DNA of 64,000 bases. Source: Oculina patagonica (lineage: Eukaryota). Below the pieces are notes generated by a model. That model was not told where the DNA came from. It saw only the letters and a list, made by a program, of their open reading frames with translations, and ran no database searches. The position numbers were made by a program, and so were the translations under genes. Positions 31,201-34,200 of the stretch are shown here, piece by piece (position 1 is the stretch's first letter; the number at the start of each line of letters is the position of its first letter). The stretch lies in NCBI RefSeq assembly GCF_052425735.1, contig NC_135765.1, forward strand, positions 992,001 through 1,056,000, in the 5' to 3' direction.

Positions 31201-34200
31201 TACATTTGCTTACAGTTACAAGATGAAGCAGCTTAAGCTTGGCTATGATACTCCTCTTCTTAACAAGTAAGTTTTGCAATAATTAAGTGCCAATAGAAGT
31301 TGACAGTTTCAGTAAATTACAAATGCCCTTGGCTAGTCTGATGCAGCCTTTTGTCCCTGTCCTGGCAGGTCAATTTTCACTTGTGATTTTGTGCAGTTGA
31401 GACTTTGAGTGCGATGCTCAATGAGATTGCTGCCAGCATTACATGCTTACGAATGGGACATCATGCTCAACAAGTTTTCCAATTAAAATAAAAAAAGTCT
31501 CTGAAGAGTCCCTTGGCAGGGACGAAACGCTGCGTCAGACTAGCCAGGGATATTTGTAATTCAATAAAAAGTGAACTTGAAATAACTTTCTAAAATTAAC
31601 ACCAATAGTTCACTACTGAAATGACAGTAAACCACTCAGAGCTTGAAGTAAGAACATGTGTTTCCAACTGGCTATGTAGAAAACACCCTCATTCAGAATG
31701 GTTTATACAGGGTTGTCGCTAAGCGCCGGCTGCCGGCGAAATTCGCCGGCTGGGAAAGAGGTCATCGCCGGCTGAATTTTGGCTGGCGAACACTCGGTTA
31801 AAAGGGCATTGAACAGTTCTTTAGTTACGCCCTCGTTCGATTTAGAATCATATATTCTGAGTAAAAAAGTTGAATTAACTCCTGACTACCTTGAATATCG
31901 ATGCCACAAAATAATTGAAATAAAGGCTTGTTTCGAGAACTTGTTTACCGTGTCCTCTTTCCGTTTTCTGCATCCGCCATCTTGCAACACGAAGCTTAGT
32001 AGCCCCCCGCATTCAAGGCGTTGTGAAAGATTGGGAACGAGTTTGTTACCAGGTCTCCTGGATCTCTCGTAAACGCGGGATAGTTTGTTCGATCAACGAG
32101 AATATTTTTGTTCAAAATTCAAAGCTTTTAATACCACGACTTCTCTGCTAAAAGGAACCACTTCAGAAGAGTTTTAGTGGATTCAGAATACTCGACAAAG
32201 ACCGGCAACAGCACGGCGTTTCGTTTTGATGACATCTAAAGTTCACCCGCTTCACTTGATCTGTTCGCTGGCGACTTGCAAATTGCAACGAACTGAAGAT
32301 TAATCCTGTATTCTCTTGCGATTTTTCAGTTGTTTTGAACGGTCTCTACCTCAGCAACAACTTTGAATGTGAAGGTTTAGTTGTTTGAAAACTAGTAGCT
32401 TTTGGTATGATGATCGATAACCACTTAATTCTTCAGAAGAATGCGTGATTGTTTGAGATTGGATTCTAAACTCAGGTGAATTTTTTGTCACGCGTATGTA
32501 CAGTTCTAAATAAATTCATCTTTTCTCAGTAATTTCTTTTGTTGTTTTTTCAATTGCATACATGTAGTTGTGATTTAACAAATATGTTGATTTGCTGCAC
32601 GTGAATTGTTTTATAGTTTGAAGGAAAAATTGTGCCTCGGCTTATAGCCGAGTGTTTTGGGTTTATTTTTTGTCAGAGTCGAACTGGTTCTGAAAACCTG
32701 TGTTAAATGTATTTTTATTTGCATTGAATTTCATATTAGAAAAATAAAATAATATGATAGATAATCCCAATATCAAGGGAAGGTAGATAACAAAATGCCT
32801 ACACATGTACAATTTTTTCTCTTTAATTGTTGTGTCTTTTTGCATAAAAGAGCCCCTAGATTTCACCAAAGTGCCCCAAATTGAATTAAAATTTTCAAAA
32901 TTTTCTGGGGGAGACCCCCCCATACCCCCCCAATGGGAGGGGGCGACCCCCTCCCATACCTACCCCCACGTCGGCTCCGCCGACGGCAGAAGGCGCTTCG
33001 CACCTTCTTTAGCCGCCTCAATTTTTAAGCTAACCGGCAGACAAATTTCTTAGCTACAACCCTGTTTATAGGCCTGCAATGTGTGCAAAAGATATGGCTA
33101 CTTCATTGCCCATGCCAAACATAGCATGCCTAGGACACTAGCCAATAATTTTATTGCTGAGGTCAGCAAATGTAAAACAAGTTGAAAGTGGACCACCTTT
33201 TACTTTAGAAAAGACCTCTTTTGAAGAGGTAGATGCTACATACATTCTGTTTATCATCACCTGCATAAAGACATCTAATTTCCTTCATTGGTAGATAATC
33301 AGGACTAGTAAAATTGTTATTAGATGTCTGCATACAGTTAATTAAAATACTGGTACATTTTGACATGGTACATGAAATTTGTGCTCTTAATAACATCACA
33401 GTTGTGTAGATGACACATTTCTTGACATAATTAATTTTCTTTCCATCAGATTCATCTTCTCCAAGATGCGCAATCTTCTCGGAGGCCGTGTGCGGCAGAT
33501 TTTGAGCGGCGGTGCACCCCTTTCTGAGGATACTCAGTTCTTTATGAATGTGTGCTTCTGTTGTCCAGTTGGACAAGGTTATGGTCTCACTGAAACATGT
33601 GGAGCAGGAACTGTCTGCAACGGTATGTAATACATGTTAATCAATCAATCAACTTTATTAAAAGAGGGTAACGACAAACAGTAAAAACTGGCAAACTAGA
33701 GGCCCTCGGATTACAAATTACAACTAAATTACTATAATATATACAATTTAAAATTTAAATTTAAAATGTCATAATATACAATTAAAAACTTTTAAAAATA
33801 GGGATTAAAAATAAAAAAAAATGTAAAATGATGAATGTCCATAAGACTAGATGCGTAAAGGTCAATTAGGCTAGTTTAAAAACAATGTAGACTCTTTCTT
33901 TTCTTTCAGAAATTAGGAAGAGTGTTCCAAAGTCTAGCTGCTCTCACGCTCAATGATCGCCCTCCTTTGGTTTCTTGTTTAAAATGGGGGGCAGGCCAAG
34001 TTGTCAGAGCCATATCGACTATTTCTTTCATTTATTTTTGAGTTTGGCACCAAGTTATTTCAGAATGGCAAAGCAATAACTAACGTATATGTGCTATGAT
34101 TTGTCCGTTTCATTATCAAAAAAAGTTCTAAAATCAGCCTAATCCTTTCATTAGTCAGTCCAATTTGTAGGCTTCTACACAGATGTTCTTTGGGCTCATC

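Follow-up and report, generated by a model that had tools for sequence, protein, structure and literature searches.

A complete hammerhead ribozyme motif lies in the sense strand of an intron of the coral Oculina patagonica, downstream of an antisense copy of part of itself, and the question raised by this locus is whether the pair acts on the host transcript, as a self-cleaving element supplied with its own mask, or is simply what a mobile element has left behind. We analyzed the surrounding stretch of 64,000 nucleotides (RefSeq contig NC_135765.1, positions 992,001 to 1,056,000 of the forward strand; hereafter the window, whose own coordinates are used throughout). Our preferred reading, which we consider very probable, is that positions 31284-31567 are one lineage-specific insertion of a small non-coding hammerhead retroelement (retrozyme or Penelope-like, non-autonomous), carried as an inert passenger by one of the introns of an acyl-CoA synthetase-family gene. 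The motif and its setting in the host gene comprise the following features.

31112-31266, plus strand: host exon of an AMP-binding / acyl-CoA synthetase family gene (open reading frame list and sequence; neighboring exon ORFs match PF00501)
31496-31541, plus strand: type I hammerhead motif (sequence, Rfam Hammerhead_1, and folding)
31496-31500 with 31537-31541: helix I
31508-31512 with 31519-31523: helix II
31527-31529 with 31533-31535: helix III
31501-31507 (CUGAAGA), 31524-31527 (GAAA), and the GUC that ends at C31536: hammerhead core

The host gene is on the plus strand, where exon ORFs around the site match PF00501 (AMP-binding), and it is probably an acyl-CoA synthetase-family gene. A GTAAGT donor occupies 31267-31272, and the hammerhead starts 229 nt into the intron, on the same strand as the pre-mRNA; the original prediction had placed it on that strand and about 230 nt into the intron, and both points held. 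For the ACSL3/4 subtype that had been named, look-ups in PDB and the Atlas with one exon peptide returned only generic AMP-binding or adenylate-forming relatives. Far from this intron, a tRNA-like match on the minus strand at 639-705 scored 29.4 bits (Rfam gathering score 29) and may represent either a gene for tRNA or a repeat derived from one.

Read from the sequence, the motif consists of AGUCU, CUGAAGA, GUCCC-UUGGCA-GGGAC, GAAA, CG-CUG-CG followed by U and C17, and AGACU; all 13 proposed pairs are standard, and the predicted cleavage site falls after C31536 and before A31537. Helix I is open and helices II and III are closed, which is the topology of type I (RF00163), and the core has the CUGANGA ... 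GAAA ... U-H cleavage site arrangement of that type. Rfam Hammerhead_1 (RF00163) matches 31497-31540 on the plus strand over the whole model (positions 1-45) with 32.2 bits (E of 2.6e-6 on 401 nt and 4.1e-4 on the full 64-kb window), and it is this model, not HH9 or HH10, that gives the best Rfam match. A search with Hammerhead_1 had been suggested as a check on the motif, and it returned a full-model match but at 1.8 bits under the gathering score of 34; for that reason the default scan at the gathering threshold was silent, reporting a hammerhead neither in the window nor in any of 20 related loci, and it was the permissive mode that reported the window hammerhead. Sequence, pairing, and model score thus agree on the complete type I hammerhead that had been claimed at 31496-31541. 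In neither the window copy nor the family consensus did we see an extension of helix I past 5 bp or a loop 1. Because helix I is 5 bp without a recognizable loop 1, the window motif appears closer to the "minimal" class than to the efficiently cleaving canonical coral motif. The tertiary contact between loop 1 and loop 2 is what makes canonical hammerheads fast. A second candidate in the window, a regular-expression hit on the minus strand at 59995-60032 with CUGAAGA...GAAA...GUA spacing, was set aside; it has no convincing helix I and no Rfam support and is probably a chance or decayed minimal hammerhead.

The motif belongs to a repeat family. When the window's own 529-Mb assembly was searched with 31290-31590 as the query, at least 74 matches were returned, and the 28-nt hammerhead core had 41 genomic occurrences when up to 2 mismatches were allowed, compared with 0 for a reversed control; the motif is therefore no chance match. 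Alignment of long copies gives a non-coding unit of ~200-240 nt. In many copies the unit tail (...TTTGTAATTATCACAAGTAACTGTCAACTTCTATTGTCAA) stands directly before the unit head (TTTTCACTCGTGATTTTGTGCA...), a head/tail permutation from which it follows that these copies either exceed one unit in length or form partial tandems, such as those at L012, L013, L014, L015, and L030. Also among the sampled places are solo units of nearly full length, numerous copies truncated at the 5' end in which the 3' hammerhead end survives, a subfamily shortened by an internal deletion, and one other head-to-head pair (L003/L004). Among 37 aligned hammerhead copies, 88.8% of helix cells are paired, compared with 28-39% when the partners are slid, and compensatory change occurs in 3 pairs and 13 cells, compared with 2.8 expected from shuffles (such as a C-G pair replaced by U-A in helix II and a G-C pair replaced by A-U in helix III). 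This covariation gives the helices real but modest support, much of it coming from one subfamily. The core is kept in 21 of 31 copies and the core together with all 13 pairs in 6 of the 31; an intact hammerhead is not unusual in this family.

Aligned to the family, the region around the motif divides into the following parts.

31277-31282 and again 31562-31567: CAATAA (sequence and empty-site joint)
31284-31567: whole insertion, 284 bp, with an empty orthologous site in three related coral taxa
31284-31361, minus strand: inverted 5'-truncated copy, which in reverse complement reads as the 3' half of the hammerhead and the unit 3' tail, nearly to the unit end (...CTTCTATTGGCACTTA)
31307-31359: left arm of the inverted repeat, paired with 31517-31569 in the predicted RNA fold
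31362-31368: head-to-head junction, which aligns to neither copy (sequence and family alignment)
31369-31567, plus strand: sense copy of the ~200-240-nt non-coding unit (family alignment)
31517-31569: right arm of the inverted repeat, spanning the 3' strand of helix II, GAAA, helix III, the cleavage site, and the 3' strand of helix I

The upstream antisense copy had been described as matching at 39 of 45 positions (31315-31359 against 31517-31561) and covering the 3' half of the ribozyme. We confirmed it and found that it extends to 53 nt at 83% (31307-31359 / 31517-31569). Its own core is destroyed, GAAA having become AAAA and no CUGANGA being present; the sense copy is 72-81% identical to long family copies, has lost ~10 nt internally, and is missing the final ~27 nt of the unit tail. 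Both arms have derived letters in common, for instance the GGG of AGCCA(A)GGG, at which place the family reads AGCCACGA, and they therefore come from one common source. Both are parts of one 284-bp insertion, which contains no ORF, and the suggestion that the upstream arm is an inverted partial copy from a Penelope-type insertion fits what we found, a truncated copy placed head-to-head within that single insertion. The CAATAA repeat may be a short target-site duplication or microhomology and is not decisive. In the right flank, the target sequence at 31568-31585 (AAAGTGAACTT) resembles the element's own tail (AAACTGTCAACTT), a likeness that could reflect microhomology-guided priming and could explain the tail missing from the sense copy. 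As for CpG sites, the sense hammerhead keeps 3 of 3, 2 of 3 in the inverted arm have decayed, and most others in the sense copy look decayed; retention in the sense hammerhead hints only weakly at preservation (about p 0.05-0.2), the sites being few and subfamily differences a confounder.

The prediction of a host role had come with a test of its own, the state of the orthologous intron in related species. Public assembled contigs, not raw reads, from four coded runs of related coral taxa (X4, X7, X11, and X16) were compared with 30900-32300 at 85% likeness. In X7, X11, and X4, one contig each joins 31283 directly to 31568, skipping 284 nt, at a depth equal to that of the single-copy flank. 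The site is filled in X16, where a contig covering 31203-31324 bridges 31283/31284 with 6 differences and another bridges 31567/31568 (31464-31596 and onward). Since the left flank (30900-31283) occurs once in the window's own genome, the relatives' contigs are orthologues and not paralogues; over the exon at 31112-31266 they differ at 4 of 157 positions, compared with ~12% in the upstream intron. Positions 31284-31567 are thus a lineage-specific insertion, absent in three taxa and present in the fourth. Precise excision in the relatives, the alternative to insertion, is unlikely because recombination between the CAATAA repeats would remove T31283, yet the joint shared by the three taxa retains it. 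The claim of a host role fails this test, as the orthologous site is filled in X16 only and not, as in a conserved (exapted) intronic ribozyme, across the relatives. The closest comparison for such a role is with the amniote intronic hammerheads (Rfam Hammerhead_HH9 / HH10), which like the window motif occupy introns of protein-coding genes, in the sense strand. Amniotes have conserved theirs at orthologous sites, whereas the window hammerhead is missing from three related taxa. Other differences among the contigs were noted in the same intron: 29 nt (31597-31625) are skipped in X16, 38 extra letters follow ~31605 in X11, and 32075-32300 is a very high-copy repeat whose summed contig depth reaches thousands, up to ~68,000, in the runs of all four relatives, compared with ~16-110 in the single-copy flanks.

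The shape of the insertion points to the machinery that may have made it. When Penelope-like elements (PLEs) integrate, a common result is a 5'-truncated copy in inverted, head-to-head orientation, one end bearing a short tail (Craig et al. 2021, MBE, PMC8557442), and the window insertion and its family present the same picture: an inverted 5'-truncated copy adjoining the 5' end, a tail of ~27 nt at one end only, and frequent 5' truncation and partial tandems among family members. It departs from that architecture in that the window unit encodes no reverse transcriptase or endonuclease (RT/EN), and mobilization would therefore have to be in trans. The genome does hold candidates for this in its many PLE-like ORFs (RT with C-terminal GIY-YIG), with at least 102 scored matches, some of them 97-98% identical and with open frames up to 823 aa. 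The search for a parent Penelope family, which had been proposed along with the motif, thus found PLE ORFs but none linked to the window family: among the PLE-like ORFs examined, we found no Penelope-like ORF or pLTR carrying the exact window module, and the window insertion itself has no RT + GIY-YIG ORF with hammerhead-bearing pLTRs of the kind that marks an autonomous PLE.

One locus, L061 (G000:C3:13538000-13547999), holds a Penelope-like ORF at 7616-9610 with RVT_1 plus GIY-YIG at its C terminus; both domain matches are sub-threshold, which we attribute to the distance of PLE RT/EN domains from the Pfam models. Paired with this ORF, inverted and head-to-head, is a 5'-truncated partner that is 93% identical, many copies of its family stand in head-to-head pairs, and the family is possibly still active. 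A second, related short hammerhead element is found at L061:6879-7129 and at L062-L067, with helix II GUCUC/GAGAC and helix III ACAUGCGUGU, and L061 holds a pair of its modules spaced by 183 nt; common to it and the window family is a module of ~110 nt extending from GGGACTTTGAGCGCGATGCTC, across the hammerhead, to AGCCACGAA. We considered whether the L061 hammerhead modules are the 3' region of the adjacent PLE ORF and rejected this, as the inverted-pair homology stops at L061:7616; the module at 6879-7129 is a separate short element, 100% identical to the solo copy L065, and the PLE ORF ends ~490 nt away. A 5S rRNA match (59.5 bits) was also seen at L061:4679-4795 on the plus strand, a few kb from the PLE copy.

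Folding bears on both the ribozyme and its proposed mask. The helix III hairpin (ACG-CUG-CGU) is unstable at +1.3 kcal/mol, whereas two ACGCUGCGU strands form a 4+4-bp intermolecular helix of -10.5 kcal/mol, which is used in the RNAcofold dimer minimum free energy (MFE) structure. Since helix III is stable in these predictions only between two molecules, the window ribozyme would be of the dimer-dependent kind, in keeping with the minimal, dimer-favoring hammerhead of Penelope or retrozyme type that had been proposed. In vitro, single metazoan type I or PLE-type hammerheads cleave poorly or not at all, and dimer behavior is reported for such motifs (Cervera & de la Pena 2014, MBE, PMC4209133; Cervera & de la Pena 2020, NAR, PMC7229834). 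The intron contains one sense hammerhead only, the antisense fragment being its complement and not a ribozyme. The insertion as a whole has an MFE of -107.9 kcal/mol with the two arms paired, and enforcing the hammerhead fold costs 33.7 kcal/mol with the arm and ~6 kcal/mol without it. In ten family copies evaluated, the hammerhead fold likewise lies 5.5-18 kcal/mol above the MFE, so that meaning attaches only to the arm's relative effect; the absolute probability of a hammerhead fold computed from nearest-neighbor energies is uninformative. Of the claim that the antisense arm masks the ribozyme, the predicted pairing with the 3' half stands, better by 33.7 kcal/mol, and an evolved mask or switch goes unsupported; masking is physically plausible on these energies, yet it would be a by-product of the mode of integration.

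Taken together, these results suggest that the hammerhead would serve the element and not the host. In multimeric or read-through transcripts of the element, two hammerheads would pair through their self-complementary helix III strands (ACGCUGCGU) and release RNA of unit length, to be copied into a nicked target by a Penelope-like reverse transcriptase / GIY-YIG endonuclease acting in trans. Such integration would leave the arrangement seen in the window, an inverted copy, truncated at its 5' end, set head-to-head, and one end bearing a short tail. In the host pre-mRNA, the lone sense hammerhead would have no partner in cis and would be held in a predicted imperfect hairpin of ~50-75 bp; it is for these two reasons most likely inert and spliced out with the intron, and we infer that it has no host function. 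Counting against this passenger reading are that the autonomous parent PLE was not found among the loci examined, that the sense hammerhead keeps 3 of its 3 CpGs, and that the empty sites are read from assembled contigs of coded runs.

We also weighed whether the passenger might be weakly active and tolerated, a small fraction of the pre-mRNA being cut by the hammerhead alone or in trans with other copies and the hairpin lowering the cost and so aiding survival of the insertion. We regard this as unlikely. Its core and helices are intact, many family copies could supply partner RNAs, and the reported depletion of retrozymes from vertebrate introns (2026 preprint, 10.64898/2026.07.22.740005) suggests that genic insertions are costly, but single motifs of the PLE-type minimal class have little or no activity in vitro (PMC4209133), and dimerization in trans depends on concentration. 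It is more doubtful still that the inverted copy is a built-in silencer of the hammerhead, such that armed sense insertions in genes survive preferentially and competition between hairpin and hammerhead makes pre-mRNA cleavage conditional.

An evolved masked ribozyme or folding switch, in which the antisense arm regulates cleavage of the pre-mRNA and thereby tunes the acyl-CoA synthetase gene, is a possibility raised by the original prediction and is now very improbable. The insertion is absent in three related taxa; the arrangement of the arm is a generic PLE by-product that recurs at L003/L004 and in the L061 PLE pair; helix III needs a second copy; helix I, at 5 bp and without loop 1, offers no tertiary stabilization; and, of the family copies sampled, one in five is just as intact. 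These points outweigh, in our view, the features that make a switch attractive, which are a complete core on the same strand as the gene, the retention of all hammerhead CpGs in the sense copy, and an arm predicted to sequester the 3' half by 33.7 kcal/mol. We give as little credence to the intronic hairpin as a source of small RNAs, ~50-75 bp of imperfect double-stranded RNA being diced or edited and feeding silencing of the element family: a long and stable hairpin is predicted (MFE -107.9 kcal/mol) and its arms match a multi-copy family, but those arms are only 83% complementary, the insertion is lineage specific, and the idea is pure inference. A chance resemblance to a hammerhead in an AT-rich intron, for which the sub-gathering Rfam score might speak, is already refuted by the full-length model match (E of 4e-4 over the window) and by dozens of homologous copies with compensatory changes.

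Read as an inert passenger, the window insertion has close counterparts among known coral elements. Corals carry hammerhead motifs by the thousand; in Acropora millepora the type I motifs number more than 6000 and fall into 16 families, ~1500 of the motifs being canonical and lying in 220-240-bp tandem retrozymes, the rest being minimal and PLE-like (PMC7229834). With the metazoan non-LTR retrozymes of that study the window family shares a short non-coding unit (roughly 170-400 nt) with a type I hammerhead, dispersed copies together with short tandem arrays, a coral genome, low GC, and a short helix III. The short non-coding type I unit in tandem that characterizes retrozymes is thus found at the level of the family, whereas the window copy, one unit accompanied by an inverted fragment, forms no tandem array and could not therefore release unit-length or circular RNA by itself. 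Its 5-bp helix I without a recognizable loop 1 sets it apart from the canonical coral retrozyme motif (PMC7229834). With the minimal PLE hammerheads (PMC4209133) it shares type I topology, a weak helix III whose self-complementary strands favor a dimer, and a high copy number with sequence variability and compensatory changes; unlike them, the window module was found in no PLE ORF or pLTR among those examined, and it is only a related short element that lies near one PLE ORF.

The window insertion is an ordinary transposable-element insertion and a further member of the known coral hammerhead elements. It would matter more than that only if the lone hammerhead cuts the host pre-mRNA or if inverted arms are enriched on genic sense insertions. 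As it stands, it provides a worked example of a non-autonomous hammerhead element for which filled and empty sites are both seen, the boundaries are exact, a truncated copy stands head-to-head, and the tail is on one side, and its anatomy favors the idea that Penelope-like machinery inserts animal retrozymes.
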